Positions 2 to 24,855 of a stretch of 64,000 nucleotides of DNA are shown piece by piece (the first letter of the stretch is position 1; each line of letters opens with the position of its first letter). This stretch comes from Mantamonas sphyraenae STR306 (lineage: Eukaryota > Protista > CRuMs). The notes below the pieces were generated by a model. It saw only the letters and a program-made list of their open reading frames with translations, made no database searches and was not told the origin of the DNA. The stretch covers positions 124,001 to 188,000 of the forward strand of contig JAPMXV010000012.1 of NCBI GenBank assembly GCA_026936335.1, read 5' to 3'. The translations under genes were made by a program, and so were the position numbers.

Positions 2-3000
2 GTCGCGTTTGGACCCAGCTCCCGCGTGATTGGCAGGTGGCGCTGGCGACTTTGGAGGATTCACAGGTGCACAGGGTGCCACGGACGGCGTGGCACGCAC
101 CTTCCTCGTGCAAGCGCGCGATGAGTTCTTCAACAACCTCACCGACACCAGCACGGTGTTTGTGGCCACGTTGACGCACACTGCCACCAACACGATTGTG
201 CCGGTGACGTTTGCCGACAGCGTGGCAGCCTCGGGCATCGAGCAGGCCACATACAACGCGACCATCAGCGGTGCTTACACACTGACGGTGACCGCAGACG
301 GCATGGCCATTGCCTCGTCCGGCGCGCCCACCTTCAACCCGGGACCCGTCGCTCTCGGCAGCATCCGTCTGCTGGACACGAGTGGCTACACGGGGGCACA
401 GGGACGCACCGACGGCCTGGCACGCTCGTTCACTGTGCAGGCACGCGACAAGTTCCTCAACAACCTGACCGACACCAGCACGGTGTTGGCAGCCACCCTG
501 ACGCACACGGCAACCAACACAGTCGTGCCGGCTCCGTTTGCAGTAGAGTCGCAGTTGACAGGTGTTGAAAAGGCAACGTACAACGCGACCATCAGCGGCG
601 CGTACACACTGACGGTGACTGCTGGTGGCCAGCAACTGACGAGTGTGGCTGCAGGTGCACCCACATTCCTTCCCAATGTCGCGTTTGGGCCCAGCTCCCG
701 CGTGATTCCGGGTGGCACGGGCGACTTTGGAGGATTCACAGGTGCACAGGGTGTCACGGACGGCGTGGCACGCACCTTCCTCGTGCAGGCGCGCGATGAG
801 TTCTTCAACAACCTCACCGACACCAGCACGGTGTTTGCGGCTACGTTGACGCACACTGCCACCAACACGATTGTGCCGGTGACGTTTGCCGACAGCGTGG
901 CAGCCTCGGGCATCGAGCAGGCCACATACAACGCGACCATCAGCGGTGCTTACACACTGACGGTGACCGCAGACGGCATGGCCATTGCCTCGTCCGGCGC
1001 GCCCACCTTCAACCCGGGACCCGTCGCTCTCGGCAGCATCCGTCTGCTGGACACGAGTGGCTACACGGGGGCACAGGGACGCACCGACGGCCTGGCACGC
1101 TCGTTCACTGTGCAGGCACGCGACAAGTTCCTCAACAACCTGACCGACACCAGCACGGTGTTTGTAGCCACCCTGACGCACACGGCAACCAACACAGTCG
1201 TTCCTTCTCCTTTCACAGTGGACACGGAGCTGCAGGGCATTGAAAAGGCAACGTACAACGCGACCATCAGCGGTGCTTACACTCTGACGGTGACTGCTGG
1301 TGGCCAGCAGCTGACGAGCGTGGCTGCAGGCGCACCCACCTTCAACCCGGGACCCGTTGCTCTCGGCAGCATCCGTGTGCTGGACACGAGTGGCTACACG
1401 GGGGCACAGGGACGCACCGACGGCCTGGCACGCTCGTTCACTGTGCAGGCACGCGACAAGTTCCTCAACAACCTGACCGACACCAGCACGGTGTTTGTAG
1501 CCACCCTGACACACACGGCAACCAACACAGTCGTTCCTTCTCCTTTCACAGTGGACACGGAGCTGCAGGGCATTGAAAAGGCAACGTACAACGCGACCAT
1601 CAGCGGCGCATACACGCTGACGGTGACTGCTGGTGGCCAGCAGCTGACGAGCGTCGCTGCAGGTGCACCCACATTCAACCCGGGTCTCGTGTACCCGGCA
1701 CAGTGTGCTGCAATCTCCCCAAGCGGTTTCACAGGCGCACAGGGTGTCGTCGCTCAGTCCCGCTTCTTCGACCTGCAAGGACGCGACAAGTTTGCAAACA
1801 ATCTCACTGCCGCGGGTGACGTCAGCTTTGTGGTCAGCTTCAACTCGGACGTGCACGGCACATCCACCCAGACCACAGAGTCCATCATCGACGGAGGTGC
1901 CGCCATCAAGCGCTACTCCTACAACGCAACCGTGTCTGGAGCCCATACGATCACTGTCACCGTGAACGGCGTCAACATCGCAGGCTCCCCATCCGCGGTC
2001 TCTTTCATTGCGGCCAATGTTGATGCACCCAGCACCGTGTTGGTGAACAACACTGGCTTCACAGGAGCACAGGGCCGCACGGACGGCGTGGCTAGGACCT
2101 TCACCATCCGTCTGCGTGATTCATTCACCAACAACATCACGACGGACATCAGCAACCAGATCATGGGCCAGCTCGTTCACACCACCCAGGTGCAGAACGT
2201 TTCGGTCTCCTTCTCCAAGGTGGCGAACGACCCGGGTCTTTTCCAGGGCTCGTACAACGCCACCGTGTCCGGCACCTACACTCTGACAACCACGGTGGCA
2301 GGTGTTGCCATCCCGCAGTCGCCTTCTACTGTCTCGTTCCTTCCCAATGTTGCGTTTGGACCCAGCTGCCGTGCAGTGGCAGGTGGCGCTGGCGACTTTG
2401 GAGGATTCACAGGTGCACAGGGTGCCACGGACGGCGTGGCACGCACCTTCCTCGTGCAAGCGCGCGATGAGTTCTTCAACAACCTCACCGACACCAGCAC
2501 GGTGTTTGCGGCCACGTTGACGCACACTGCCACCAACACGATTGTGCCGGTGACGTTTGCCGACAGCGTGGCAGCCTCTGGCATCGAGCAGGCCACATAC
2601 AACGCGACCATCAGCGGTGCTTACACACTGACGGTGACCGCAGACGGCATGGCCATTGCCTCGTCCGGCGCGCCCACCTTCAACCCGGGACCCGTCGCTC
2701 TCGGCAGCATCCGTCTGCTGGACACGAGTGGCTACACGGGGGCACAGGGACGCACCGACGGCCTGGCACGCTCGTTCACTGTGCAGGCACGCGACAAGTT
2801 CCTCAACAACCTGACCGACACCAGCACGGTGTTGGCAGCCACCCTGACGCACACGGCAACCAACACAGTCGTGCCGGCTCCGTTTGCAGTAGAGTCGCAG
2901 TTGACAGGTGTTGAAAAGGCAACGTACAACGCGACCATCAGCGGCGCGTACACACTGACGGTGACTGCTGGTGGCCAGCAACTGACGAGTGTGGCTGCAG

Positions 3001-3360
3001 GTGCACCCACATTCCTTCCCAATGTCGCGTTTGGGCCCAGCTCCCGCGTGATTCCGGGTGGCACGGGCGACTTTGGAGGATTCACAGGTGCACAGGGTGT
3101 CACGGACGGCGTGGCACGCACCTTCCTCGTGCAGGCGCGCGATGAGTTCTTCAACAACCTCACCGACACCAGCACGGTGTTTGCGGCTACGTTGACGCAC
3201 ACTGCCACCAACACGATTGTGCCGGTGACGTTTACCGACAGCGTGGCAGCCTCGGGCATCGAGCAGGCCACATACAACGCGACCATCAGCGGTGCTTACA
3301 CACTGACGGTGACCGCAGACGGCATGGCCATTGCCTCGTCCGGTGCACCCACCTTCCTGC
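2..3360 (+). repeat. Near-identical DNA tandem/segmental repeats (offsets 333, 675 and 2346 bp)
   Basis: Bases ~32-1010 recur almost exactly at ~2378-3356. Mirror ORFs 386..940 and 2732..3286 are offset by 2346. Homologous positions at 386, 1061 and 1394 give the 675 and 333 spacings. Confidence 0.95.
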
Positions 3361-6300
3361 CTGGTCCCATCCACGTCGCCAACACCGTCTCCGAGGGTCA
3401 GGGCATTTTCACCAGCACCGCGGGTGTTGGTGGCCAGTTCAACCTGCAGACGCGCGACATCTTTTACAACAACCTCACCGACACTGGCGCCGTACTCACC
3501 TTTGTCATGAGCCACAAGACGAACAACGCTGTGACAAACCCCACCGTCACGTACGCCAACGTGACAAACCAGGGTGCATACACAGTCTCTTACAACGCCA
3601 CCGTGTCCGGTGACTACTCCATGGCCATTACTGCAAACTCGCAGGCCATCCCCAGCTCCCCGTTTACAATTTCCGTCGCACCCGCGGGGGAGTTTGTGGC
3701 CGAAACACGCGTCACAGGTGACACCGTCACCGAAACCGTCGGTTTCCCGGGCATTCTCTGGATCCAACGCCGCGACGCCTTCCAGAACAACCGTACCAAC
3801 GAGGTCGGTGCTCTGGTCGTCCAGCTCACGCACTCGAGCGGTGCTCCCATCTACAGTGCCACCAAGGAATCACTTGGCAACGGTCTCACAAAGGCAACGT
3901 ACAACGCCACCGTCATCGGTACCTACTCCATGGTGATCAGCATTGGCGGCGTCGGTGTTCCTGCCTCGCCGTACACTGTCACGGTGGTCAACTCGGTCAC
4001 CCATTTGCCCAACACCGTCCTCTACGGCGCTGGCGCAAGCTCGGGTATTGCCGGCAACATCAACTCCTTCTCCATCCAGAGCAAGGATGCCTTTGGCAAC
4101 AACCGCACCACCACCGACGAGAACTACCTTGTGGCGTTTACACACCTCACGCAAACTGGCGTCACCTACAACGCCATGGTCGCCGCCAAGGCGCCCTCTT
4201 CCCTGGGCCAGTACCTGGCCACGTTCAACATGACCGTCGCCGGTTCGTATTCCATGGCAATCACGGACAACGGTGCGCCTATCGCAGGCTCGCCCTTTGC
4301 CTACACGCTGCGCACGAACGATCTCACCCTGACGGCCACACGCACGACAGGCCTCGGCCTGTCGCAGGCAACCGCGGGTGTGTTTGCCCATCTGCACATC
4401 CAGGCGCGTGATGTCTTTCTCAACAACCGCACAGTGCACGGTGACCCGTTCCTCGTGCAGCTGTTCCACAGTGTGTTCCCTGTCGGAAACGTGAATGGCA
4501 CCGTGAGCAACGACGCTGCCTCGGGCGCATATGCAGTTGCTTACAACGCCACTGTCAGTGGCCAGTACGCATTGTGGGTCCGTCTGAATGACAGTCACGT
4601 GCCGGGTTCGCCCTTTACCGTGACCGTGAGTCCCAATGTCGTGCATGCACAGACCTCCATTGCCTATGGCCAGGGTCTGAGCACAGGTTTGGCTGGCAAC
4701 AGTGGCTCGTTCCTGTTGCAGGCACGCGATTCGTTCAGCAACAACCGCACCGTGGCCTCTGATTTGGGCCTACTTCTCGGGCAACCTCAAGCACAACGTG
4801 TACACCACGCAGGTGCCGGTGACGTTCGCACACACGGCCCTCGGTGTGTATCAAGGCACGTTCAACGCCACGGTCAGCGGCCAGTACGCTGTCAACGTGT
4901 TTGGTGCCACCACCACGCACATCTCCGGTTCGCCGTTTACAACCACGGTGGCAACGCAGGCCACACATCTGCCCAACACCATTGTGTATGATGCTGGTGC
5001 GTACACGAGCACCGCAGGCGCTCTGGCCACCTTTTCCATCCAGGCACGCGATGCTTTCTTCAACAACCGCACCGTGGAAACCGACAACTTTGCTGTTGTG
5101 CTCAAACACAAGACGCTCTCTGTGACTGATGTCAACGGTGCTGTGAGCGGAGGGGCAAACACGGGCAACGGCTTGTACACGGCCACGTACAACGCCACGG
5201 TCAGCGGCGATTACGCCCTGTGGGTGCGCGACGGAACCACCCACGTGGCCGGCTCGCCCTTCAGTGTCAACGTGGTCACCGAGGTGACGCACGTGCCCAC
5301 GACCACCGTGGATGGCGCCGGCCTTTCTGCATCCGAGTCGGGCCAGGCTGCTGTGTTTTACGTGCAGGCGCGCGATGCCTTCCAGAACAACCGTACCGTG
5401 CGTACCGACACGGTGTCCACTACGTTGACGCACACCACCCAGCCGGGTGTCACTGTCAACGGTGTCACCACCGGCTTTGGTGCAACCACCACGGGTCGTT
5501 ACACAGTGACGTACAACGCCACGGTGTCTGGTACCTACAGCATGGCTGTGACACTCAATTCGCAGGCTGTGCCGGGGTCGCCCTTCACCGTGGTCGTGGT
5601 GACGGCTCCGCTGGATCTGCGCCGTGTCACGCACACGGGACGCAACCAGCACACTGTCGAAGCTGGCAAGCCGGCCAACTTTATCATCCAAGCGCGCGAT
5701 GCCTTCAACAACAACCGCACTGTGAACACGGATTTGTTCGCTGTGGTCCTGTCGCACAAGGTCTTCACCGCCAACCCGAAGGTCGAGGTCATGGCCGTCG
5801 TCACTCCCATGACCCCGGCCACACTCGGCCGCCATAGCGTGGACTTTAACCTCACGGTCAGTGGCGACTACGATCTCAAGATCACGTCGGGTGGCACCCA
5901 CATTGCCGGCTCGCCTTTTGCGTACCTGACCAACCCCACGGAGACGTTCTTCCCCACCACCATTGCCTACGGCGCGGGGCTGAACAACGCGGTCGCAGGT
6001 GTGTACTCCACGTTCATCGTACAGGCTCGCGATGCCTTCTTGAACAACCGCACTGTGACCACAGACAATCTGGAGGTGTTCCTTGACCACGACCGCCAAG
6101 ACTTTAACAGTCTGGCTCTGGTCAACGCCAGTGTGATCAGCACCACGCCCGCAGCCGGCACCTACTTGCTGCAGTACAACGCCACCGTCAGTGGCGCCTA
6201 CAGCATGACAGTGCGCGACCGCACCCTCAACACCCTCATTGCTGGCAACCCGTTCCCAGTCACTGTTAAGACAGCCGAAACGAACCCGCCGCTTTCGCGT

Positions 6301-9300
6301 GCGTGGGGCGCTTCGCTGACCACGGGCACAGTGGCCACCGAGGGCTTCTTTGAGATCCAGTCGCGCGATCCGTTCAACAACAACCGCACCGAGACAAACG
6401 ACAACTGGGTCACGCTGCTGAAGCACCAGCAGTACACGGTGCCCGACGTCACCGGTGTCCTCACCGCACGTGTCCCTGCCACCGACGGCCGCTACGAGGT
6501 GCGCTACAACGCAACCATTGCCGGCAACTACGCCCTGTGGGTCACATTGGGCAACAACGGCCAGCACATCGCAGGCTCGCCCTTTTCGCTGACCCTCAAG
6601 ACGGAGGCCACCTTTACCGCAAACACCCTCGTGTACGGCGTGGGTCTCACCGACGCACGGGCAGCAGACACAGGCTCGCTTACCATCCAGGCGCGCGATG
6701 CCTTCTTCAACAACCGTACCCAGGTCACCGACTCGTACACGGTCGTACTGACCCACACCACCCTTTCGGTGACTCCTGTGACTGCGACGGTGACGGCCAA
6801 GACGGCCACCACGGGCCAGTACGCTGTGGCCTACAATGCCACTGTGAGTGGTGTGTATGCCATGGCCATCAAGCGCAGCGACGTGCACATCACTGGCTCG
6901 CCCTTCACTACCACGGTGATCACACGCGAGACCAACCCGCTCGTCTCGGTGGCCTATGGGGCCGGGCTCAGTGACGCCGTGTCTTCGTTCACCGCCGGAT
7001 TCACCATCCAGGCCAAGGATTCGTTCCTCAACAACCGCACGCAGGTGACAGACGATTTCAAGGCCGTGCTCACCCAGGTGGTCAACAGCGCCACCGTCAA
7101 CGGCATCGTCACGGCCAACGCGCCGACCACGGGAACGTACGGCGTCACGTACAACGCCACGGTGTCGGGCACCTACTCGCTGGCTGTCACACAAGGCACC
7201 AACGGACCTCACATTGTTGGCTCGCCCTTCACTGTGGTCGTCAAGACGGGCGTCACTCACTTGCCGCTCGTGGCCATCTCTGGGCCAGCGACTCTGTCCA
7301 CCACCTCGGGTGTGGCACAGACATTCACCATCCAGGCCAAGGATTCGCACGGCAACAACAAAACCACGAGCGGTGACACCTTTGTGGTGCGCTTCGACCA
7401 CAAAGATCTGCCTGTGGCCACTGTCAACGCAGGTGTCGTTTACAACGGCGGCACCTCGGGTCAGTACACGGCATCGTACACCCTCACTGTGGCTGGCAAC
7501 TACCTGCTCAAGATCACCGACAACAGCATCCCCATCGGAGGCTCGCCCTTCACCACTGTCGTCTACCCGACCACAGTCAGCGCATCCAAGACGCAGGTGG
7601 TGGGCATGGGTCTCACCCAGGTCACCGCTGGCTCCGAGGGCTACGCCACAGTCGCCTTCAAGGACAGCAACGACAACAACCGCACACAGGGTTGCGCCCT
7701 CGTCACGAGCGGTGCCGCCGATTCTGGTTTCCGACGCGTCAACATGGCTGTGACTGCAAGCTCGACCGTCACCATGGCTGTCTGGTTCAAGGCCGCTGTT
7801 GCAGGCTCTGGAACACGTGGCATTGCCAGTCTGGCAGCAAGCACCGTGCCCCACTTTGGACTGCGCATGTCCAGCTCCAACCAATTCGGCGCCCTCGTCG
7901 ACGCGACCTCTAAGTACGTGGCAGTCACCACCGAAGGTGTCTGGCACCACGGCGTGGCTGCATGGAACAGCAACGGTTCGTGGGCCGTCTGGCTGGACGC
8001 AGCACAGAGCTTGACTGGTATTACCGCCAACAACATGCCTGCAGGTGCGCCCCTGTACGTGGGTCACGAGCGTGATGGATCCACAAGCTCCAACAACGGC
8101 TTCCAAGGCTCCATCGACGAACTGGCCATCTTCAGCTCGTGGAAGGCCACGCAGCCCGAAGTGATGGCCTTGATGAAGTACAAAACGCTGCCCACGGCCG
8201 CGTCGCTGATGTACCTGTACAACTTTGACGAGTGCTCCACCATCACGTACGCCCTGGACCAGAGCGGCAACGATGGCCTGGGTTCGTTTGTCAACACGGC
8301 CCAGACGACCTACGAGGCCTCACTGGCCCCGTTCTCGTCGGACAACATCACTGTGAACCTGCAGCACAACGTGTTTGCTGCGCCAACCCGTGGTGAGTGT
8401 CGCAGCGTCGGCCACGGCCCAAGGCGTGGACGATCTGCGCTACAACGCGACTGTCGGGGAACTACACTCTTTCGGTGCGCCTGGGCACGGGTCTGACCAA
8501 CATCGACCAGTCGCCGTATTCGCCGTACATTGTGACGGAGGCCACAGACCTGCGCCAAACCGTGGTGTTTGGTGCGGGCAAAACCAACTCGCAGGCCGGT
8601 GACGTCGCCTCGTTTACCATTCAGGCCCGTGATACGTTTGCCAACAACAAGAGTGTGACCACCGACACGGTGACTGTGTCCCTGGACCACAAGCGCACCG
8701 ACCTGACGTACAACTCGGTGGTCGTGGCAGGCAACCCCAACGCCATTGTGCCTGCCACCCTTGGCCAGTACTTTGTGACCTACAACGTCACTGTGAGCGG
8801 ACAGTATGCCATGAGTGTGCTGTTTTCGGGTGCCCACGTGGCCGGTTCGCCGTTTGACGTGTTTGTGGCCACCGCGCCCACGGACATCCGCAACAACATC
8901 GTGTATGGCAACGGACGCTCGCAGGTTGAAGCCGGCTACGATTCCAGCTTCATCATCCAGTCGCGTGATGCGTTCTTCAACAACCGCACCGTCACCACCG
9001 ATGCGTACACGGTGCGTGCGTACAGCCGCCGTTTCCCCAGCATCATTGTCAACGGTACCGTCAACGCGCAGAACGGCGTTCTTGAAGGCTCCTACTTTGT
9101 GCGCTACAACGCCACAGTGGCCGACACGTACGACCTGCATGTGACCAGCGGACTGGTGCATATGGCGGCGTCTCCGTACACGCTGCTGGTGGACCCCACC
9201 GTGACGCATCCTCCTCGCTCTGTGGCCTTTGGCCCCAACCTGTACGCAGAGACCGCAGGCTATCCTGGAGGCTTCACCATCCAGGCACGCGATACGTTTG

Positions 9301-12300: not shown

Positions 12301-15300
12301 TACGTCGCTGCGCCCGAGGATAAGCTGTACAAGTACATCGAGCCCTTTTCGCCCGATTGCCGTACCACAGGCGAGGTTGCCGTCGGTGTGCAGCCGCGTG
12401 TGCAGGCCGGAGTCACCTATTTCCCCAACCTGGCGTTGGGTGCCTCCACCGCGGGTACCTCTCCGGACCAGGGCAACGGCAACAGCAACGTCACCGGCAT
12501 TGTCGACGGCGATCGCTGCTGCGAAAAGACAGACCTCACCGATGGCTACAAGTGTGGCCTGAACTTCCAGCGCATGAACGCCACCGTCACCACGCCGCGC
12601 CAGGCTGTGATTACTCTGTCGCGCCCTGCGTTTGTCAATGAGTTCCTGTCGTCGTGGTACCAGCCATGCCGTAACCAGCCGCCTTACTACGAGATCGAGT
12701 TCCTCGACCGCACGGACAACACGTGGAAGCAGCTGGTGACGCGCGTGACCAAGGCCAACCAGCTCGCCAGTCTGGGTGCGCAGCAGCCATGTTTCTTTAT
12801 CCCTTCGGACAAGGACGACGTGTCGCTGTGTATCGATTTCATCACAGAGGTGCGCGCGGACAGCTTCCGCATCCGCTTCAACAACACCGAGGCGGACATG
12901 GGTGCGGCCTCAGTCACAGACTTTGGCTGGCTCTTTGAGTTTGAAGCCCACGGCATCTTCCAAGACACGCCCGAGTTCACCGAGCTCGTGTCTGGTCTGG
13001 ACGCGCTGCCTGCGCAGCAGTCGGTGTCTTCCAGCGCGCTGCCCAACATTGTGGTGCGCACCAAGAACCACATTGGCGAAGTGTTGACCACAAACGACAC
13101 CACCACAAAGTGGATGTCCTTCAACATGACCCTTGTCGGCGGCTCGGGTGTCGATGTCAAGAGCCGCTTCATCTCGGGCAACACCAACGTCACTGTCGTG
13201 GGCGGCATCGCCAACTTCACCGGCCTGGCGCTGACTGCACCCGAGGTGGGCACCTACAAGTTCACCATCTTTACGGACAACAACCTCAACCGTTCCGAGA
13301 CTTTCTTGACCGTGAGCACGGGTCCGCGTTCACCATTGAACGGCAGACTTCGGCTACATTGACCACAAAGTCGGTGTTCCGGTACGACATCCCGACCATC
13401 CAGTTCAAGTCGTTTGATGCGGGTCATAACCCGGTGGGCAACATCGACGTGGTGCGCAACCTGACCCTGACCATCAGCAGTGGTAGCAACTTTTTGGTGG
13501 GCAACCGCACAGTGACCATGCCGGCCAACACGGGTGTGGTTTCGTTTTCCGACTTGGCGCTGCTTGCGCCTGTACCAGGCGTGTACAACCTCACCTTTGT
13601 TGCATCGGATAACATCACAGTGCCCGCGGGTAACTCGGTCACAATCACAGTGACCAACGGTGACCCTGTGGCCCTGGTGACCACTGCGCGCACGTTCAAC
13701 ACGTCGATTGCCTCGGCACTCACCGTGGCCATGCCGCAGTTTACCATTGATGCACAGGACGCCTCTGGCACGCGCACGCCGCTGGCCAACGGTACGGTTG
13801 TGACAGTGACGGAACTGAACGGCACGGCGCTTTTTGGCACAACCACACGCACCATGTTTGAGGGCCAGGTCGTTTTCGACAACCTCGAGCTGCGTTCGCC
13901 TGTGGTGGGTAGTTTCGTGCTGCAGTTCACCACGAGCGGCACAGTGACCAACACCACCCAGACGGTGTTCATCGTCACGGGTGAGCCCCTGTATCTGCGT
14001 CTGCAGAACACAGGCGTCAAGACTGTGTACAAGAGTGTGTCCACGGTCCAGCTGGAGCCGCTCAACTTCAACGCATTTGATGCTGGTAACACGTTTGTGT
14101 CGACCACCGACACGCAACAGCGCACATTGGTGGCCACGTTTGCCAACACCACCACACAGAACTTCCTGTCGGGTGTGACCACGGCAACGATGACCAACGG
14201 CAACGTGACCCTGACGGGTCTGACGTTCACGGCGCCGCCTGTGGGCCAGTTCAACATCACGTTCACGGTGGGCACCCTGAGCACGGTTGTGGTCACCTAC
14301 ACGGTGGAGGTGGGTCCGGCCTTCCAGCTGGAGACGCCCACGCCCAACGCATACTCTCTGCGTACCGCAGTGACCACGCCTGTGTTGCCCGAGCTGACGG
14401 TGCGCGCCTTGGATGCTGGTTTCACGTTTGTGAACCAGACAGACACTGTGTTGCGCAACGTGACGGTGGCTCTTCCTGCCAGCCCTGCTCTGCTGCAGGC
14501 CGACGGTGCACGTGGAGTCATGGCCAATGGCACCGTGACGTTCACAGGCATCAAGCTCACGCGCCCTCCTGTGGGCACCTACACCCTGACGCTGAGCAGC
14601 AACAACCTGCTGAGCACACAGTTTGTGGTGACCATCGACACGGGTGATCCCATCGATCTGTACGCTCCCACGGTCGACCTTGGCTCCGTGCAGTCGCAGG
14701 AGAACACACAGGTGCCTTCGTTCCAGATCATTGCTCGCGATGCCGCTGCACAGACGGTGAAGCCGGCTACGGTCGCCAACCTGACGGCGGCGCTGGTGTC
14801 GTCCAACAGCAGTTCGCTGGCGGTCAACGGCACCAAGAGCATCGATTTCAACACGGCGACGGTGACGTTCAACAACCTGACACTGTTTGCACCGCGTGTG
14901 GGCACATACCAATTGACATTTGGTGCAGGCAATCTGACGCAGGCCAGTGTTGTGGTGCGCGTGCTTGTGGGTGCGCCGTACCGCTTGGTGCTGGACTCGC
15001 AGGTCACTCCGTCCTCGTTGACGTACCCGACCCTGCCCACGGTGACTGTGGGTACCGTCAAGGTGCTCACCAACGACATTGGTTCCAACGTCGTTCCCGA
15101 CGCCCAGGGTTTCCTGGTCAACATCACCAGCAGTGCGCTGAACGCACAGACGATCACGCTGAAGGGCAACAACTCGCTTGTGATGTCGGGTGGTCAGGTC
15201 TCGTTTACGGGTATCACCATCGACAGTCCGCAGAACGCAACATACACGCTGATCCTGTCGTCGACGGGTCTGTTGCAGACGTCGCTTACGCTTGTGATCA

Positions 15301-18300
15301 CCCCGGGTCCCGCCGTGAGCTTGGCCACCTCGGGTGGTCCGCGTGTCTCGTACCCTTCGGCTGCGACGATCCAGTTGCAGGCAGAGACTCTGCGTCTGCT
15401 GGATGCAACGGGTAACCTGGTGCCGCCTGAGTACAACCAGCCGCGCCTGGTGACGGTGCAGCTGTTCAACACCACTCAGGATTTCCTCAGTGGTCAGCTG
15501 ACTGTGAGCAACAACAACCAGTCGACGCTTGTGTTTGGCAACGTGACGCTCAACGCGCCGCCGAGGAACGTGTACACGCTTGCCTTCACATCGCCCGGTC
15601 TGCAGAACGCCACCATTCAGTTCGAAGTGACCATCGGTGCGCCTGTGAAGCTGAACATGCAGACGGTCACTGCGTACAGCTTTGACACGGCCGAGACGGT
15701 TGTGATTCCCGACATGGTGGTGGAGGCCTTGGATGCAGGTTCGATTCCAGTGGGCTCCACAGACAGTGCCAACCAGCGTACTGTCAACGTGTGGACGCCG
15801 CAGATGCAGTACACCACGGGTTCTACGGTGACGGCCACCATGAACTCGGGTGTGGTGACCTTCAGCAACGTGTTCCTCACACGCCCGCCCAACGGCACCT
15901 ACCTGCTCTCCTTCTCCACGGCCGGCATGACCAACGCCACGGTGGAAGTGACCATCAACACGGGTCTGCCCTTCTTCTTGCAGGTGCAGCCGTATTCGGT
16001 GACGCCGTTGGCATCCCAATTCACGGTGCAGTTGGATGCCGTGTTTGTGTCCACACTGGATGCAGGCAGTGGATTCACGCCGCGCACCAACAACTCGTAC
16101 ACCGTTTCGATTGCGGTGAACGGCACCACGCCAAGTGTGCTCACGGGCAACCTGACGCGTACGTTTGTGCAGGGCCGCGCTTCGTTCCCGGATCTGCGTC
16201 TGGTGTCGCCGCGCGAGGGCACGTACACGTTGACGCTGACGTCGGCGGGACTTGTGAGCACAAGCACAAACGTGTATGTGCGCATTGGTCCGCCTACGGA
16301 GCTGGTGCTGACCAACGGTCGCTCGTTCTCTGTGCGCTCGCTGCCCAGTACGGTGCTCAACTCGCTGACGCTTGAGGCCAAGGATGCGGGTGGATCGTTT
16401 GTCAAGGCAACCGACGGAGCGACGCGCCTGGTGACTGTGCGTCAGACCAATGCGTCGGCCACGGCCACAGTGCTGCAAGGCACGCAGGTGAACTACACCA
16501 TGGTGGCCGGTAATGTGACACTGGCCGGGCTGACGCTGATCAACCCGCCGGTCAACACGTACGGCTTTGAAATTGTGTCGCCGCTGCTTGCACGCGAGTT
16601 GTTTGTGGTGCATGTGACGGTGGGTATCCCTGTGACGCTGGTGGTGACCAGCAACCGCACGGTGGGTGTGCCTACCATTCTGGATGTGCTGGTGCCCTCG
16701 TTCGATGTGATTGCTCGCGATGCGGGTGGCACGTTTGTGGGCGACAGCGATCCTGTGGCGCGCACCATCACCGTCACAGACATGCAGGCCAAGGAGCTGC
16801 GTGGTACGCTGACCTACACCATGATCAATGGTTCGGTGGTGCTCAACGACATCCGCATGCAGGCGCCTGCTGTGGAGCCGCGCTACCTGCTGTTCAGCAC
16901 GCCCCAACTCACGTCCATCAACGTGACGGTGAATGTGTTGACGGGTCCTGCGTTTTCGTTGAAGCTGCACGCTCGCGGACGCAACGTGTACCGCTCGGAC
17001 AAGCTGGTGCCCCTGGATATGGTGGAGCTGCGTGGTCTGGATGTGGGCGGTTCCGAGGTGGGTTCCACGGATCCCACCGTGCGCACGGTGACGGCGCAGT
17101 CTGTGGCTGGCAGTGCCAACATCACGGGTGTCCTGACGGTGCCCATGATCAACGGCACGGCGCAGCTGTACAACATCTCGCTGGTGTCGCCCACGCAGTC
17201 CAACCACACCATTGTGTTTACGTCGGGCACGCTGTTGAACGTGACCATGACCACGCGTGTGATTGAAGGTGTGGCCTACTTTATGGAGGCCTTGCCGTAC
17301 ACGGGAGCGGCAAAGCAGGTGGAGATCAACACGGTGCTGGACGACATTGTGGTGCGCGCCTACGACGCGGGCTTTGGATTGACCACGCTCACGGCAGGCA
17401 AGACGGCCACGGTGAGTCACAACAGCGCCAACAGCCACCAGCCTGCCCTGACTGGCACCACCACGGTGTCGTTTGTCAACGGCACGGCCACGTTTACTGG
17501 AGTGGGTCTCAATCGCCCGCGTGCGTCGATCGGCTTCTACCTGCTGACCATCACCAGTGCCAACCTGGAGTCCACCACGGGCGTCAACGTGACCGTGCGT
17601 GTCGGTCCCGCCGAGACGCTGCGTGTGACGCAGACAGCCGGTGCCAACTACCGCTCCGTGCCGGTGATGGGTCTGCTGCCAATGACTGTGCGTGCCTACG
17701 ACGCAGGAGGAGACTTTATTGGCACGGCGCAGCAGCCTCGCGATTACACCATCAATGCGACGCTGGTGAGCACCACGGGCACTCTGTTGCCTCTGGTGGG
17801 TACGCTGCAGGCAGGCATGGTTGACGGTGTGGCTGTCCTGGACAAGGTGGCCATCCAGCGCCCGGCCGTCGGCGTGTACACGCTGCTGTTCCAGTCGCTC
17901 AACAACCCGCCTCTTGTCCCTGTCAACACCAGTTTGTCAGTGGGTGTGGGTCCAGGTTTCCGCTGGGCCCTCAAGTATGCCAGCAACGCGACTCTGACCC
18001 TGGCCTCGCAGATCAGCACTGTCATCCCGCCGCTGGCCTTCCAGGTGCTCGATGCAGGCTTCAACTTTGTCGGTGTCACCGACCCGCAGGCGCGCTCGAC
18101 AACCATTGCGGTCAAGACCAGCACGGGTGCCATCACGGACTCGTTCAACTACGTGCCCAAGGCTCCTCTGCTGGGCAACACCGTCGGCCTGACGTCCGCC
18201 GGTGCCATTGACTTTTCCACGCTGAGCCTGAAGCGCCCGTCTGCAGGTTTGCATGTGCTGGAGGTGACGGCTGGCGATCTGCTGCCCATCACAGTGTCCA

Positions 18301-21300
18301 TCACGGTGACCATTGGTCCGCCGGCGCGCATGGCACTGACCACGCAGAACAGCACGGTGACGCTGCTGTATCCTGGTGACGGATCCAAGCGCACGGTGGT
18401 GCCCGACGTGGTCCTGCAGATTGTGGATGGCGGTGGCAACGCCGTGGCCTCCCAGCTGCAAGGAACCCTTGCCACCATCACCCTCATTGACGCCCAGCCG
18501 CTGCGTCGCGACCCGCGTGTCACGTCCACGGCTGCCTCGGTGGCTGGTGGTGCTGCGTCCCCCTTTGCCTCTGCCTCGTCGCCGTACGGCGGCAGCAGCA
18601 GCAGCCAGTTTGCCGCACGCGGACTGGTGCTGGACGACGGAAGCAACAGCGAAGGATCGGTGCAGACACGCGCTGCACTGGCCAACGGCTACACGCTGGC
18701 CAATGTGATTGAGACGGGCAACACGAGTGTGCCCTTTGACAGCAATGGCCGTGCCGTGTTTTCGGGTCTGACGATGACGCCGTACGCGGGTCGCTACACG
18801 CTTCGCTACGGCGCCGGTTCGCTGGTGTCTGTGGACAACTCGTACGAAGTGACATTCACGCCGACTGCGGTGAGCGGCATCGATGCTGTGCAGAACATCA
18901 GCACAGACAACATCCCGTCGCCGTTGACGCCTGTGGTGCGTCCTCCGATTGTGCGTCTGATCGACGACGTGGGCAACCTCATCAAGATCGACGGCAAGAC
19001 GGTGGAGGTGTCGCTGTTTACGCCCAACCCTGTGTTCAACCTGCGCACGGATCTGACCGAGTTCCGCGTGCAGACGGTGGGCGGCATTGCGGCCTTTACC
19101 AAGATGACGATGAACGGACCGTACTCGGCCGAGTACACCGTCACCTTTTCCGTGCTCAACGCCAACCTGGACGTGGACACGTCGGTGACGCCCCTGGTGC
19201 TGGCCAACAACACGCGCTTTGTCTCGTGTGCCCAGATCCAGGACAACACACAGCGCGACGGCCTCAACGGTGACCGCTGCGTGTGTCAGCCCGGATACTT
19301 CCTGCAGCAGAGCGGAGGCGGAGCCAAGTGTGTGGCTTGCCCCGTGTCCACGTTCCAGTCCCAGCCCGAGCAGCAATCGTGTGAGAGCTGCCCGGTCAAC
19401 CAGGACACCAGTGACCGCACCGCACAGACCAGCCAGAGCGACTGCTCGTGCATCGATGGCTACTACAACACGCCACAGAACCCAGAGTGTCGTCTGTGCA
19501 TCCGTGGCGCCGCCTGCCGCAAGAACGAGGTCATTGAACCCGGCACGGGTTACTTCCGCTTCGACTCGGCCACCACCCTGGACAGCATCACGCGATGCCC
19601 TGTGCAGGCTGCATGCAAGGGTGGAGTCAACTCCACCTGCGCCGTCGGCTACCGCGGTCCGCTGTGTTCCATCTGCGACCCCGGATACGGCAAGTTTGGT
19701 GGCGAGTGTCTGGAGTGCGGCGACCCGTTCTGGAACGGCGTGCTTGTGTTTGTGTTTTTGGTGGGCGGTACCATCATGCTTGTCTTCCTGGTGCGCACTG
19801 CTGCAGGCGAGAAGAGCGAGATGAGTATCATCCTCAAGATTTGCCTGAACTACCTGCAGGTGGTGGCCTTTGTGGGCGACTTCCAGATGGGCTGGAGCGA
19901 CTCTGTGGTCGAGTTCTTTTCATTCTCGTCCATTGCTCTATTCTCACTGCAGTTGCACCCTCTGGATTGCTCCCTGGGGCTGGACTTTTACGGACGCTTC
20001 GATTCGTACATGCTCTTCCCCGTGCTGGCACTCTCCATCCCGGCCGTGTTCTTCTTTGCCCGCTACTCGTTTGACGTGTGGCTTGCACCCAAGCTGGGTC
20101 TCAAGGTGGAGGCCAAGAGTGAGCTGCAGCGCCGTCTGGAGGCCAATCCGTTTGGCAACCTGGCGCAGTCCATGGTGGGCAACGGCGACCTCAAGGGCGA
20201 CGCCAAGAAGAAGGCGGCGGAGGCGGCCAAGAAGAAGGGCAAGGCGCCCATGATCGAGACCATGAGTCTGGAGATGCTGCAGAAGGCGCAGGAGAACCTG
20301 AACGTCAAGGTCAAGACGCGCGAGGAGGAGTTCCGCGAGAAGTACATCAAGTTGTACACGGTGGCGGTGCTGGTGACCATGTTTATCGGCCACCCCATTG
20401 TGAGCAAGGTGATCTTCCAGATCTTCAACTGTGTGGAGTTCACCCCCACCGAGGCGTACATTGCAGACGACATGAGTGTGTCGTGCAAGACGGAGAAGTA
20501 CATCTACTACCGCGACACGTACGGCTACATGATGGTGATCCTGTACTGCATCGGCGTGGTGCTGATCGGTCTGGGCATCCTGGTGTACTACCGCAACCGT
20601 CTGGAGGAGCCCGAGGTGCAGGAGCGCTTCCGCTTCATCTACGAGGGTTACGTGCGCAAGCGCTTCTACTGGGAGGTGATCATCATGGGCCGCAAGTTGG
20701 CCATTGTGGCGATCATTGTGTTCTTCCGCGACAAGGCGCTGACGCAGCTGTACTCGGGCATGTGGATGGTGATGGGTGCGCTTGTGATGCACCTGTACGG
20801 CCGTCCGTTTGAGGGCAAGCTGCCGACGAACCTGGAGACGCTGTCGCTGAGTTCGTCGTCTGTGTCGCTGCTGTCGGGTCTCATGTTCTTTGCGGTGGGC
20901 AACGAACTGAGTGAGCAGGATGTGCTCAGTGTCACTGTGTTTGTGCTTCTGCTCAACGTGGTGACCACGGGCGTGTTTGCGGTGCTCATTGTGCGTGCCT
21001 TCTACCAGCTGGCCCGCCGCCAGCGCAAGGTGCTGGAAATGAGCGCACGCATTGCCCGTCAGTACGAGGAGCTGAAGAAGGCGCAGGAGGCTGCCGAAAA
21101 GGCGCGCAAGGAACAGATGGACCGCGAGCGCCTGGAGCGACAGATGCGTGGCGAGGTGGGCGAAGAGACCACCAAGGGCTTCTTTGGCAAGAACGCACTC
21201 AAGTTCCGCAGCGCCGCCGATGCGATCCGAATGCGTGCGGCCATGCAGGGCATGGAGGGAGGCACGGACGACTACGAGTTCTACTACAGTTCCGACTCGT

Positions 21301-23096
21301 CGGATCTGCTGCCGGACGAGGTGTACGAGTACGTGCAGCCGCAGCCGGGAGACCTGGACTACGACACGTATGTGGAGCAGCAGCAGGCCAAGGAGAGCGG
21401 CACGGGCGTGCGTTTCGGCGCAGCCGCGGCCGCAAGCAGCAGCAGCGCGGGAGCCGCCGCTGGCACAGGTGCAGCCGCGGCTGGACCGGCCAAGCAGGTG
21501 AAGCGCAAGAAGCTGAAGAAGCGCAAGAAGATTGTGGACTCGACGAGTGAAAGCGATCTGGAAGAGGAGGATCCGGAGGCGCAGCACTTGTCGCTGTTGC
21601 AGCGCGTGACGATGTTTGACGAGGTGGTGAAGGACGAGATGATGGTGGCCCACCTGGAGGCGTTCCTGCGTCGCCACCTGAACGAGCAGCAGCTTGCGTT
21701 CTGGAACGACACGATCGACTTTATGAAGAACTTTGAGGGATGGCGCAAGAGCCAGCGTGCCAAGCAGGCCGACCATCTGCTGGAGGTGTATCTGGACCTG
21801 GACTCGCCGCAGTACCTGTTTGTGGACTTCTCCGTGGTGATGGAGATGGAACAGCTGGTGGACAGCGGCGAGCTGGACAAGGACATGTGGATCCCTGTGA
21901 TGGAGGTGGTGTACCGTGCCCAGTTCAAGAAGTTCAGCAACTACTACCTGAACACGCTGGTGGACGACGAGCTGGGTGTGGAGATCCAGGAGGCGCTGAT
22001 CCAGCGTGGCGACGACAGGAGCCGCATCAAGATGAAGAAGGAGAAGCTGGCCGCCCAGGCGAAGCGACGTGCAGAGAGGCGCAAGAAGCGAGAGGACGAG
22101 CTGGAGGCACGCCGTGTGGAGAAGCGGGAGAAGCGCAAGGTGATTGCCAAGCAGCTGCGCGAGAAGCAGCTGGAGACATTGCGCGAGAACGCGTCGCGCA
22201 ACAAGATGACCAAGGAGGAGAAGAAGGAGGCTGCCAAGGAGGACAAGAAGCGCAAGGAGGCACAGAGCGTGAAGCAGACGGAGGAGTACAAGGAGGCACT
22301 GGCACGCGTGCGGGAGAAGCGCGAAAAGTTTGCAGCGCAGCGCAAGGCGTTGCAGGAGGAGGTGGATCGCATGGAGATGCAAGAGGCAGCGGCGTCGACG
22401 GGAGGTGTGAGCTTTGCGGCAGGAACGGCTGCAGGCGAGGGTGGAACGCAGTTCCAGACGCTGCGTGCGCAGTACCTGCACAAGGACAAGGGCGGCAAGG
22501 GCAGCTCGGGCAAGAAGAAGGACGGCAAGAAGAAGAAGGGCAAGAAGAGCAAGGGAAAGAACGCACAGGGCGAGGCGGGCAACCGTCGCACCACGCAGCG
22601 TGTGGACTTTGGTGGAAGCGACAGGCGCTCCACGGTCAACCTGACCAGTCTGGCAGAGCTTGCGCAGCTGCCTGAGGAGCTGACACTGACGGACAAGCTC
22701 AACGTGTTTGGCGAAGTGCTTGCCGAAGACGAACTGCTGGCCGTGTTTGACTCGTTCCTGCGCGAGGCCCTGTCCCGCTCCGAGGCGTCGTTCTGGCGTG
22801 ACGTGCAGACGTTTGAGAAGTTCTTTGACAAGCTGGACGACGAGGACGACCGCATCGAGGAGGCGGAATGGATCATCGAACGCTACATCGAGGTGGGCGG
22901 CGAGAAGTCGCTCAACTTTGACTACGGTGTGACGATGAAGTTCCTGCAGCAGCTCGACGCAGGCAACGTGTACAAGGAGATGTTCCGCGAGGAAATCATG
23001 CTCATGTACCGCGATGTGTACGACGAGTTCCGCAAGCTGTACTCCAAGAACCAGTTCCTGGCGCTGGAGGATGCGCTCGGTCGCGATCTCTTCTGA
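2..23096 (+). CDS. Giant multi-domain cell-surface membrane protein (filamin/Ig-like repeats, 2 LamG, 2 IPT/TIG, discoidin-like, Ig-like array, Cys-rich, ~9-10 TM, 2 RGS-like); 5' partial, frameshifted in this assembly
   Basis: ORFs 30..4991, 4702..8496, 8375..8602 (part), 8397..11651, 11554..13362 and 13110..23096 continue the same repeat register across 1-2 nt indels at ~32, ~4770, ~8388, ~8457, ~11622 and ~13325. The repeat consensus (F.IQARD.F.NNRT...YNATVSG.Y...GSPF) runs through the junctions. Joined length is about 7,690 aa. Confidence 0.85.
7690..8340 (+). other. LamG/pentraxin-like domain 1 of the giant protein
   Basis: TMAVWFK...GVWHHGVAAW...VWLDA...LYVG...FQGSIDELAIF...LYNFDE pattern of concanavalin-A-like LamG domains. 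Confidence 0.85.
10310..10970 (+). other. LamG/pentraxin-like domain 2 of the giant protein
   Basis: YTLSYWVR...DGKYHHIVITWRSSDGQTRLYVDG...VRIG...WIGYIGEVDLFSAAL...AWTF. Confidence 0.9.
11810..12345 (+). other. Two IPT/TIG domains
   Basis: TSIFPTLGPIAGSTLITVTGNDF...LEVSNN and TDFTPNNGPVYGRTIVTITGENF...LSVSNN match the IPT consensus P..GP..GGT.ITI.G.NF. Confidence 0.85.
12420..12960 (+). other. Discoidin (F5/8 type C)/galactose-binding-like domain
   Basis: NLALGA...IVDGD...VITL...YEIEF...WKQL...ADSFRIRF...LFEFEAHG. Confidence 0.6.
12960..19215 (+). repeat. Second array of diverged Ig-like beta repeats (~95 aa, 'DAG' motif)
   Basis: Recurrent V.A.DAG..V...R..TV...M.NG.V.F..L.L..P..G.Y.L.F....L......V..GP pattern, about 20 copies by length. 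Confidence 0.75.
19215..21010 (+). other. Cys-rich (ephrin-receptor-like/GCC2-GCC3-type) region followed by a ~9-10 TM membrane domain
   Basis: CVACPVSTFQSQPEQQSCESCP and CAVGYRGPLCSICDPGY, then hydrophobic helices with KI...YLQ, YIADDMSVSC, FIYEGY...YWE.IIM.RK and PF....NLE motifs, as in the widespread protist family resembling the fungal TRP-like (Flc/Pkd2) TM domain. Confidence 0.7.
21610..21955 (+). other. RGS-like domain 1
   Basis: FDEVVKDEMMVAHLEAFLRRHLNEQQLAFWNDTIDF...ADHLLEVYLDLDSPQYLFVD fits the RGS helical pattern. Confidence 0.75.
22700..23055 (+). other. RGS-like domain 2
   Basis: FGEVLAEDELLAVFDSFLREALSRSEASFWRDVQTFEK...AEWIIERYIEVGGEKSLNFD...MFRE. Confidence 0.8.
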
Positions 23097-23238
23097 AGCG
23101 TTGGCGCAGGACGATGACGATGACGATGAACAACTTGGGATTAAGTGTGTTGGCAAGGGTGTGAAGAGAAAGCATTCGCAATGGAGAAGGAAACAACCCC
23201 AACACGACAGTCACTGGTCTTTTGCAGCGATGCGCTTG

Positions 23239-24855
23239 ATGGACCAAAGGTCCATGCCCCGTGCTCGCTCTCTTGTGGAGGCGTGTGTGCGTTGTGTGTA
23301 CCAGCACATTGACGAAGTGGTGTTGAGTATTGCTGGTGGCGATGGGCAGGAGGAGGGGGAGGGGGCAACGACAATGTTGCCGCAAGAGGTGTGTGAGCAG
23401 GCGTTGGCAGCGGCAAGTCGACGGGCATGGGGACCATTGCGATCCAAACACTTGGATCTGCTGGCACACAACCTAGTGGAGCTGTGCATCAAGGCACGGC
23501 ACGAGACACAGGTGGCCATTGAGCGAGAGGCGTTGCTGCGGGTGCCGTCCCGGTGTCCGGAATTGGTGGCACTTTGTCTGGACTTTGACGATGCCGACGA
23601 CAGTGTGGTGGACGACACGGTGCTGGAAGCGTTTGCAGAACATTGTGGCAGGTTGGAGGAGGTGCAGCTGGTGGGATTGAACCACATCAGCGACGAAGGG
23701 GTGGTGGGTTTGCTCTGCAGTGGCACCGTGCAGCAACAACTGCTTGCGCTGACCCTACGCAACTGTGACGAATTGAGTGACAAGACCATGGTGAAGGGGG
23801 TGCGTGATTGCACTGCCCTGTGTTCCCTGACGCTGAGTGGAGTGAATGTGACCGACTACGGCGTACGTGTTGCCATCAAAGGGAGTGCACACACACTGGA
23901 GAGCCTGGACGTGTCACGATGCTCGCTGGTGGATGAAGTGACGCTGTCGTATGTGTTGGACAAGTGCACCGTGTTGGAGGACTTGATGGTGCATGGGGCA
24001 TCGACCGTGATTGACGACAACCAATTGGCGTTGGTGGCCATGCACCCACACGTGTGTCGTCTGGGCTTGGAGAATTGCAGCGAGGTGACGGGAGAGGGTC
24101 TGATGGCCCTATTGACACGCAATGAGCCCCATGTGGTGCATTTGGATCTGACAGGGGTGCGGTTCCTGTCCGAGGTGGCTGTGTCTGCCATGTTGGCTGC
24201 CATGTTGCCACACCTGCAACACCTGTCCCTGGCCGACGCCGGAGATGGTTTGGATGACGATGTGTTTGCACAGGCGTTGCAGACAGTGGGTGATCACATG
24301 TTGCCCATGCGCCACTTGGATCTCAGCTGGTGTGAGGACATCACCGACACTGTCTTCTCTGCCCTCTTCCAACGCATGCCCTCCCTGGAGCACCTCAGCG
24401 TGCGCCAGTGTACAAAGTTGTCCGACGAGGCGTTGGTCACCCTGGCCGCCTCCTGCACCCAACTGCACACCCTGGACATCAGTCGTTCCTACCATCTGTC
24501 CGGCCAGGCCCTCACCAAGGTCGTCCAGGCCAATGCACACACCCTGCTCACCCTCTCTGTGGCATGGATTCCATCGGTGACCAGTGACACCCTGTTGGAC
24601 ATTGCCACACATGCGGTGCAACTGCAAAAACTGGACATTGCCGGGTGCAAGGCCGTCTCCGACGAGGCTGTGGCCAAGCTGGCTGGTCTCTTGCCAGACC
24701 TGTGGTGTCTCGACCTCACCTACATCAACAGTGTGCAGGATGCAACGTACGAGGCCCTCATGCGAGCCTCTCCTGGCCTGTTGTTGATCAACTACTACGC
24801 CGATGTGTGGCGTGCGGTGGGAGGGAGCAATGTGAGTGCCCATGATGACGAATAA
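23239..24855 (+). CDS. Leucine-rich repeat protein (cysteine-containing LRR, AMN1/Rad7/FBXL-like)
   Basis: Repeated L..LDLS.C..ITD units and an N-terminal SLVEACV...LP motif. Start uncertain: ATGs at 23230, 23239 and 23254. The ORF-track start at 23014 overlaps the upstream gene. Confidence 0.85.
   Translation: MDQRSMPRARSLVEACVRCVYQHIDEVVLSIAGGDGQEEGEGATTMLPQEVCEQALAAASRRAWGPLRSKHLDLLAHNLVELCIKARHETQVAIEREALLRVPSRCPELVALCLDFDDADDSVVDDTVLEAFAEHCGRLEEVQLVGLNHISDEGVVGLLCSGTVQQQLLALTLRNCDELSDKTMVKGVRDCTALCSLTLSGVNVTDYGVRVAIKGSAHTLESLDVSRCSLVDEVTLSYVLDKCTVLEDLMVHGASTVIDDNQLALVAMHPHVCRLGLENCSEVTGEGLMALLTRNEPHVVHLDLTGVRFLSEVAVSAMLAAMLPHLQHLSLADAGDGLDDDVFAQALQTVGDHMLPMRHLDLSWCEDITDTVFSALFQRMPSLEHLSVRQCTKLSDEALVTLAASCTQLHTLDISRSYHLSGQALTKVVQANAHTLLTLSVAWIPSVTSDTLLDIATHAVQLQKLDIAGCKAVSDEAVAKLAGLLPDLWCLDLTYINSVQDATYEALMRASPGLLLINYYADVWRAVGGSNVSAHDDE

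Follow-up and report, generated by a model that had tools for sequence, protein, structure and literature searches.

The locus described here, in the protist Mantamonas sphyraenae STR306, raises the question of whether a giant adhesive ectodomain, a multi-pass membrane module and two regulator of G-protein signalling (RGS) domains are joined in a single gene, as an initial annotation of the DNA had proposed, and of what such a protein would do. The window, by which we mean the whole stretch of 64,000 nucleotides that was analysed, is C12:124001-188000 (contig JAPMXV010000012.1). It was studied in the context of a genome of 25,061,354 bases in 78 contigs; the published FALCON assembly comprises 25.06 Mb in 78 primary contigs with a GC content of 59.19%, and the organism is diploid (PMC10492846). 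The gene lies on the + strand and ends at window position 23096. Its ectodomain, transmembrane (TM) module and RGS-coil-RGS tail are one gene in the genus, and its product is a surface protein with the N-terminus outside, the C-terminus inside and the RGS tail in the cytosol.

Window positions 1-23096 (+) constitute the larger, 3' portion of the gene, the full extent of which is C12:120154-147096 (about 26.9 kb). The start at C12:120154 (= L005:3154), 3,846 bases before window position 1, is an ATG followed by a signal peptide, paralleling the N-terminus of the M. plastica orthologue, and the stop codon is at window positions 23094-23096, one residue from the point where that orthologue ends. 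The interval 2-23096, given before as the gene, is thus correct for the 3' part but not for the whole, since the start lies upstream. The upstream DNA contains more filamin-type repeats and a LamG-like exon; introns are present at the 5' end of the gene, and none could be detected in the window portion. The predicted protein, a very long surface protein as expected, has about 8,700 amino acids (aa), with an ectodomain of about 7,900 aa overall, of which about 6,540 aa are encoded in the window, in agreement with the earlier figure of more than 6,500 aa of extracellular-type repeats.

In the window the gene appears as five long + strand frames that overlap end to end (30-4991, 4702-8496, 8397-11651, 11554-13362 and 13110-23096) and a short third-frame piece of ~21 codons at ~8393-8455 (+), between the third and fourth of six frameshifts. 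The protein pieces were each searched separately and were never joined across frameshifts. A large protein search returned P0002, a 63% identical protein from M. plastica, the longer isoform of which, P0152, has 6,831 aa. Both derive from the M. plastica transcriptome in EukProt and contain the two RGS domains, and P0152, labelled as a complete open reading frame (ORF), spans the ectodomain, the TM module and both RGS domains in a single transcript ORF. In tblastn alignments P0152 residues 818-1991 corresponded to window positions 4813-8382, residues 2018-3070 to 8457-11615, residues 3075-3641 to 11626-13326 and residues 3616-6830 to 13248-23090. Consecutive window pieces were separated by 0-26 P0152 residues and were colinear over every break, with 57-65% identity right up to and past each frameshift. 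Because the orthologue is a single complete transcript ORF colinear over all the breaks, this is, as had been claimed, one gene and not several. When the C-terminal 1,289 aa served as query in a word-based search of proteins, one distant match was the sole result, and a search for a full-length M. sphyraenae protein with P0152 as query returned M. plastica proteins only. The parts of the gene that lie in the window are as follows (Pfam scores in bits).

2-7640 (+): filamin/GEX2-type immunoglobulin (Ig) repeats, ~100-110 aa each (Filamin 247.8 and 287.8 bits; Ig_GEX2_N 105 and 167.8 bits)
7747-8139 (+): LamG (ConA-like lectin) domain 1 (Laminin_G_3 46.3 bits, cut-off 27.6)
8393-10358 (+): further filamin-type repeats (Filamin 201.5 bits for the piece)
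10359-10811 (+): LamG domain 2 (Laminin_G_3 45.8 bits; weak Pentaxin match, 27 bits)
11821-12339 (+): two IPT/TIG domains (Pfam TIG 74.8 bits, two stretches)
12340-13319 (+): Cys-containing module, ~330 aa, 11 Cys (no Pfam match; piece 65% identical to the orthologue)
13320-19226 (+): ~17 repeats of ~110 aa (51 N-glycosylation sequons, 1 Cys)
19227-19730 (+): Cys-rich stalk, 19 Cys
19314-19445 (+): Ephrin_rec_like (Pfam 26.6 bits, cut-off 23.1)
19590-19718 (+): DUF7630, PF24633 (28.1 bits on the isolated module, cut-off 27)
19725-21041 (+): nine-helix membrane module, N-terminus out and C-terminus in (hydropathy and AlphaFold)
ORF residues 2206-32, 2237-56, 2293-2320, 2413-37 and 2462-93: TM1-TM5
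ORF residues 2521-38, 2543-64, 2570-95 and 2602-32: TM6-TM9
20070-20345 (+): Lys/Glu-rich TM3-TM4 loop, cytosolic (19 Lys and Arg in 92 residues)
21585-21980 (+): RGS-homology domain a, RGS-a (Pfam RGS 36.9 bits; predicted local distance difference test, pLDDT, 85-98 in the model)
22014-22400 (+): charged coiled coil, ~130 aa (model helices 150-213, 216-237 and 239-278)
22404-22640 (+): disordered Lys/Gly-rich linker (pLDDT <50 over model residues 280-358)
22677-23087 (+): RGS-homology domain b, RGS-b (Pfam RGS 44.6 bits; pLDDT 87-97 in the model)

The membrane topology can be read from several features. Hydropathy and an AlphaFold model of the TM module (71 sequences, pLDDT 88, predicted TM-score 0.85) agreed on nine TM helices; of the earlier estimate of 9-10 helices, nine stands and ten does not. 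The loops of the module contain 36 Lys and Arg residues on the predicted inner side vs 4 on the outer side. The five loop Cys residues are all outside, in columns conserved in the family, and N-glycosylation sequons number 148 in the exterior vs 3 in the tail. From the signal peptide, the odd number of helices with the N-terminus outside, the positive-inside charge and the distribution of Cys and sequons it follows that the RGS tail is cytosolic, the location that the initial annotation required. The charged TM3-TM4 loop is conserved only in the RGS-bearing clade (see below): the five closest paralogues align through it, whereas all others match in two halves.

By sequence and by predicted structure both tail domains are of the RGS family and have the RGS fold. 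With Pfam RGS (PF00615), for which the cut-off is 23.9 bits, the pair reached 63.5 bits, and both were above the cut-off singly as well (scores listed above, from a six-frame genome search). Sequence matches in the PDB were RGS proteins only for RGS-a, and EhRGS-RhoGEF, RGS2, RGS5 and RGS8 for RGS-b. When the tail model was compared with the PDB by Foldseek, which does not tell which of the two domains was aligned, all 50 rows shown were RGS or RGS-homology (RH) domains, RGS2, RGS8, RGS16 and RGS4 among them, with probabilities of nearly always 1.00 (lowest 0.99) and target-normalised TM-scores mostly of 0.5-0.6. The RGS identity of both domains, and the order RGS, charged coiled coil, RGS on the + strand, which Pfam and the tail model both gave, are as originally described.

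RGS tails are not confined to this gene. A receptor-type RGS profile detected them in four further M. sphyraenae paralogues (C7, C32, C70 and C2) and, besides P0002/P0152, in M. plastica P0003 and P0162, so that five M. sphyraenae loci and three M. plastica proteins carry RGS-type tails in all. The same profile found no such tail in ~147 relatives from outside Mantamonas, this absence covering the 150 nearest representatives. Pfam, applied to the 92 tails that were 95 aa or longer, detected RGS in two; its other matches were to EF-hand, Ank, PDZ and zf-UBP domains. In a maximum-likelihood tree of the membrane module (26 rows from the best matches, variable loop removed) all RGS-bearing members fell into one Mantamonas clade with 100/97 support, in which C12 paired with P0152, C7 with P0003 and C70 with P0162 as orthologues. 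This single clade with three orthologue pairs shows that the fusion of the module to RGS arose once, before the split of the two species, and was then diversified and retained. Its retention since the split argues for a function.

The nine-helix module is a widespread, uncharacterised eukaryotic orphan family and not a seven-transmembrane (7TM) G-protein-coupled receptor (GPCR). The large protein search gave 8,911 cluster representatives at E<=0.001 for the membrane module, from CRuMs, ancyromonads, apusomonads, glaucophytes, streptophyte algae, cnidarians, haptophytes and ciliates, with Rigifila, Fabomonas, Thecamonas, Platysulcus, Cyanophora and Mesostigma among the sources. Predicted-structure matches were to cnidarian, green-algal, haptophyte and ciliate clusters, including DUF7630 clusters, with TM-scores up to 0.81. 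As in the family, a DUF7630 Cys-knot immediately precedes TM1 and a W-E...R-K motif follows TM5; in the 71-sequence alignment W371, E372, R378 and K379 are nearly invariant. A GPCR, rhodopsin, TRP-channel or other solved fold was considered for the module and rejected, the structural matches being at noise level: Foldseek against the PDB gave no E-value <=0.001 and TM-scores <=0.28, exhaustive alignment with 48,161 chains gave a best Z of 7.9 over 112 residues, which is noise for helical bundles, and the module profile had no match among PDB sequences. Pfam scans of the window pieces revealed none of 7tm_2, GAIN/GPS, PKD, REJ and PLAT. The only characterised relatives found, and distant ones, are the fungal Pkd2/Flc/TrpR proteins (Pfam TRP, PF06011). 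In M. sphyraenae at least 70 loci carry the module, most of them as giant frames, the longest of which has 10,900 codons (examples are C26:~135,500-168,000, C61:~308,000 and C54:~330,000); for a small genome of 25 Mb this is a heavy investment in giant multipass surface proteins. The tails of relatives are short or contain EF-hand, Ank, PDZ, zf-UBP, TIR, START or WW domains.

In the ectodomain, filamin/GEX2-type Ig repeats with two LamG domains are followed by two TIG domains, ~17 Ig-like repeats and the Cys stalk. The filamin/GEX2-type repeats number 29 by motif count with the upstream part included (~29 or more), and Pfam Filamin matched with E-values of 1e-60 to 1e-87 per piece. The two LamG domains bear out the lectin-like modules that had been noticed, and the Cys-containing module at 12340-13319 may be the element that was called lectin-like. 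For the ~2,000 aa encoded by 13320-19226 no Pfam family was above threshold and relaxed E-values gave nothing usable; the language-model neighbours were Ig_SMCHD1_6th/Big_1 clusters at 0.94, of bacterial Ig type, a lead by which these repeats are probably Ig-like (Big_1/invasin/SMCHD1-Ig-like). The Cys-rich stalk noticed earlier is present with its Ephrin_rec_like and DUF7630 matches, and eight of its Cys columns are invariant or nearly so among 71 relatives. At the DNA level the distal filamin-type repeats (window 2-3360, and L005:5300-7000 upstream) are near-identical, the copies at window positions 684 and 3030 being the same over 60 bases, whereas the proximal ones have diverged. This suggests recent unit duplication or homogenisation of the distal repeats.

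Taking these parts together, we consider it moderately probable that the protein is a surface receptor that couples adhesion or tension to the heterotrimeric G-protein cycle through its RGS-homology tail. In the proposed mechanism a heavily glycosylated rod of Ig-type, LamG and TIG modules, led by a signal peptide, would project from the cell, anchored by the Cys-knotted stalk and the nine-helix module (DUF7630 and a distant PF06011/TRP-like core), and in the cytosolic tail the coiled coil would keep the two RGS-homology domains apart. Contact with a surface, prey or a ligand, or mechanical load, would act on the ectodomain and might alter the state, clustering or trafficking of the nine-helix module. 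This change would reposition the membrane-proximal RGS-homology domains, which would bind activated G-alpha, with RGS-b as a possible weak GTPase-activating protein (GAP) and RGS-a more likely as a GAP-dead docking domain. Adhesion or tension would in this way be coupled locally to the G-protein cycle. That G-alpha is bound, whether this binding is of a GAP or an effector-like kind, and what the stimulus is are matters that we infer. If the RGS domains are GAP-dead binders of G-alpha, the receptor would act as a G-alpha effector or scaffold.

Several observations weigh against such a role. The residues that contact G-alpha in GAP-active RGS domains are Ser85/Glu87/Asn88, Asn128, Asp163 and Arg167 in the RGS4 numbering of the RGS4-Gi-alpha-1 complex. 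The SEEN motif is replaced by NEQQ in RGS-a and by SRSE in RGS-b. In RGS-a the equivalents of Asn88, Asn128, Asp163 and Arg167 are Gln, Phe (Tyr in M. plastica), Lys and Tyr, respectively. In RGS-b the equivalents of Asn88 and Arg167 are both Glu; those of Asn128 and Asp163 are kept in M. sphyraenae, the orthologue from M. plastica having Gly at the former. All the G-alpha contact residues are present in canonical RGS genes of this genome. Judged from these residues, the GAP activity of RGS-a and RGS-b is doubtful, since the contacts have largely been lost. The proposal that the protein controls G proteins through its RGS domains agrees with the presence in the genome of three G-alpha genes, on C38, C10 and C59, plus canonical RGS genes, but is weakened by the loss of most GAP contacts. 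Also unfavourable is the state of the gene itself, which has 6 frameshifts in 27 kb vs one each in two paralogues of 16-17 kb and none in a paralogous frame of 32.7 kb (10,900 codons); the genomic copy could be a dead allele.

An in-genome control for the GAP residues exists at C54:237889-238818, where a 337-codon frame encodes two canonical RGS domains in tandem (91.1 and 77.1 bits), in which the SEEN and Asn motifs are intact.

The six single-base shifts that break the frame in the assembly, five of them +1 and one -1, are located as follows.

25-34 (+): frameshift 1, +1; within near-identical repeats, sister copies of which have one G fewer
4763-4813 (+): frameshift 2, +1; T/G homopolymer context
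8382-8393 (+): frameshift 3, +1
8445-8460 (+): frameshift 4, +1; P0152 has 26 residues over the gap 8382-8460
11615-11626 (+): frameshift 5, +1; flanked by P0152 residues 3070 and 3075
13320-13332 (+): frameshift 6, -1

Introns as the cause of the frame changes were rejected, as only 0-26 residues separate the pieces relative to the P0152 ORF, and the only GTGAGT...CAG among the sites spans 13 nt, too short for an intron. As to programmed frameshifting, the six sites showed no shared motif and no stop codon, and no further search was made. The paralogue at C7:143001-163000 has one frame change relative to its orthologue ORF, with 11 nt for 4 residues, so that it is not an intron; the one at C70:167001-187000 also has one, with 150 nt for 40 residues, which is an intron or a shift.

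The alternative that survives best, and that we regard as a possibility to be taken seriously though not the probable one, is that the shifts are real and the copy seen here was inactivated recently, being a pseudogene or, in this diploid, a null allele, with the function residing in paralogues or in the other haplotype. The excess of lesions over the C7 and C70 paralogues and the unbroken 10,900-codon frame are what this would predict, and the assembly, with 106x PacBio coverage, had been polished with Racon and Pilon (PMC10492846). Against it, and in favour of assembly error, are the complete lack of in-frame stops in ~8,700 codons once the six shifts are allowed for, and the fact that each lesion is of exactly one base, five of the six being in the same direction. 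Conservation with the orthologue continues through every site. A similar intron-less shift is present in the conserved C7 paralogue (that of C70 being a shift or an intron), and frameshift 1 is within a near-identical distal repeat copy, where short-read polishing is weak.

Somewhat unlikely, in our estimate, is that the RGS-homology domains scaffold other partners and do not contact G-alpha, like the RH domains of axin, sorting nexins 13/14/25, GRKs and D-AKAP2, which would make the protein an adhesin or receptor unconnected to G proteins. The loss of canonical contact residues from both domains, with even the one retained Asn not conserved in the orthologue, would fit such a tail, and its structural neighbours include the RH domains of axin, SNX13, SNX25, GRK1 and PDZ-RhoGEF; there are RGS domains that lost GAP activity and now serve as scaffolds (PMC3971589). 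Yet the best sequence and structure matches are R4-type, GAP-competent RGS proteins (RGS2, RGS8, RGS16 and RGS4), and the tail is conserved in the whole clade next to the membrane, where G-alpha resides.

The relationship to PF06011 bears on a further alternative, which is compatible with the receptor reading given above but which we hold to be unlikely: a tethered mechanosensitive channel of the Pkd2/Flc type, stretch-activated and Ca2+-permeable, with the giant ectodomain as its tether on the outside and the RGS tail as an accessory for cross-talk with G proteins. The match to PF06011 extends over TM4-TM9 and scored 28.0 bits with the isolated membrane module and 23.3 bits in the long ORF (cut-off 28.5). 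The same family scored 34.7-48.4 bits in the paralogues C70, C7, C2 and C30 and matched 17 of 71 relatives at E<=0.001. Schizosaccharomyces pombe Pkd2 has a similar layout, with signal peptide, Ig-like domain and nine TM helices (bioRxiv 10.1101/2022.08.11.503631), and its calcium permeability has been reported to be activated by membrane stretching (PMC9727806). On the other side, the score of the Mantamonas protein is just under the cut-off and the match is confined to the C-terminal two thirds of the module, the protein lacks the TRP_N/ML-like domain of the fungal family, neither a pore motif nor a selectivity motif was recognised, and similarity to solved channels was not above noise (see above). 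The expression channel-like used of the protein at the outset thus has some basis in a borderline, distant match to PF06011 and none in a solved channel fold.

That several neighbouring genes or a chimeric mis-assembly were misread as one, as the six frame changes and the introns in the 5' region might be taken to indicate, is close to refuted by the colinearity of every piece with one transcript ORF of the orthologue, by the lack of an own start or signal peptide in any window piece, and by the same domain order in the paralogues and the M. plastica proteins.

Other genes may be mentioned briefly. The next gene downstream, at window positions 23014-24855 (+), is of leucine-rich-repeat type; its longest frame shares 80 bases with the 3' end of the receptor gene, and its true start is probably a later ATG. 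A different unusual RGS fusion of the same genome is found at C70:24000-33000 (L011, minus strand), where a 1,973-codon frame encodes, besides a canonical RGS domain at its C-terminus (62.9 bits), a 'cell morphogenesis C-terminal' domain of the Furry/Mor2 type (MOR2-PAG1_C, 74.5 bits).

The receptor reading has consequences beyond this gene. As the module family is large and the searches yielded no solved structural match for it and, among characterised proteins, only distant fungal relatives, the RGS fusion provides a concrete, testable hint at the signalling target of a nine-helix module with thousands of members. The variety of signalling tails on the module (EF-hand, Ank, PDZ, zf-UBP, TIR and START) is as expected of a receptor chassis. 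A much bolder generalisation, which we consider quite improbable, is that the DUF7630/PF06011-like module is an ancient, pan-eukaryotic non-GPCR receptor chassis with the heterotrimeric G-protein cycle as its native output. If it were true, the Mantamonas RGS fusions would be a 'Rosetta stone' for thousands of orphan giant surface proteins, possibly extending to the apicomplexan CRMP invasion sensors, which are suspected of GPCR-like signalling without a molecular link. Mantamonas belongs to CRuMs, which branch deeply near the base of Amorphea (PMC10492846), and a conserved clade of such proteins in CRuMs is relevant to the question of how contact or tension at the cell surface came to be linked to G proteins in early eukaryotes.

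Among the closest known systems are the 7TM-RGS proteins of Arabidopsis (AtRGS1), Trichomonas and Naegleria (PMC3386157, PMC9283941, PMC3971589); the characterised membrane-anchored RGS proteins described in the literature consulted have a seven-helix module with a short exterior. In plants and many protists it is membrane-anchored RGS proteins that form the receptor side of G-protein signalling. They share with the Mantamonas protein a multi-pass membrane part and a cytosolic C-terminal RGS, that is, a G-alpha regulator under a receptor-like module. In contrast to them, the Mantamonas protein has nine helices of an unrelated module instead of seven, an ectodomain of ~7,900 aa instead of a short N-terminus, and a tail with two RGS-homology domains, a coiled coil between them and degenerate GAP contacts. 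In Mantamonas the sensor wired to RGS-type domains is of another kind and far bigger, with a nine-helix module that bears a giant adhesive rod.

The fungal Pkd2/Flc/TrpR proteins are another such system. In S. pombe Pkd2 a signal peptide and an Ig-like domain on the outside are followed by nine TM helices and a disordered tail that includes a short coiled coil (bioRxiv 10.1101/2022.08.11.503631). With the fungal family the Mantamonas protein shares the signal peptide, Ig-type domain(s) outside the cell, the number of nine TM helices and a coiled coil in the cytosolic tail; the sequence match over TM4-TM9 is borderline (28.0 vs 28.5 bits). The Mantamonas protein differs in having no TRP_N/ML-like domain and in possessing a DUF7630/Ephrin_rec_like stalk and the giant ectodomain, and none of the fungal members has been described with RGS. 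The true family of the module are the orphan DUF7630 plus multi-TM proteins (e.g. the Thecamonas 'cell surface receptor IPT/TIG domain-containing protein'), which have short tails or tails with other domains, RGS tails being seen only in Mantamonas.

Adhesion GPCRs and polycystin-1 are built on the same logic, in which a multi-pass anchor in communication with G-protein signalling bears a very long adhesive ectodomain made up of modules. Unlike in these, Pfam scans of the Mantamonas protein found no 7tm_2, GAIN/GPS, PKD, REJ or PLAT domain, and no GPCR fold was above noise. The apicomplexan and ciliate CRMPs (cysteine repeat modular proteins), which are also giant, have Cys-rich repeats of the EGFR-like type and nine predicted TM helices, with the N-terminus out and the C-terminus cytosolic, and have been proposed as adhesion-GPCR-like contact sensors (PMC9670195). 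Going by this description, they resemble the Mantamonas protein in size, Cys-rich modules, number of TM helices and orientation, and differ in not having been reported with RGS.

In the literature on PF06011, DUF7630, Mantamonas and protist 7TM-RGS proteins no description of this architecture was found; that on PF06011 and DUF7630 consisted of fungal and animal TRP surveys only, and the Mantamonas genome paper does not mention RGS (PMC10492846). The early impression that the architecture had not been described holds in this sense, with the qualification that fusions of RGS to TM segments are in general frequent and convergent (PMC3971589). Receptor-linked RGS as such is already known, and only this variant is new: in a small conserved protist clade, the partner of a tandem RGS-homology tail is a nine-helix orphan module with a giant adhesive ectodomain.

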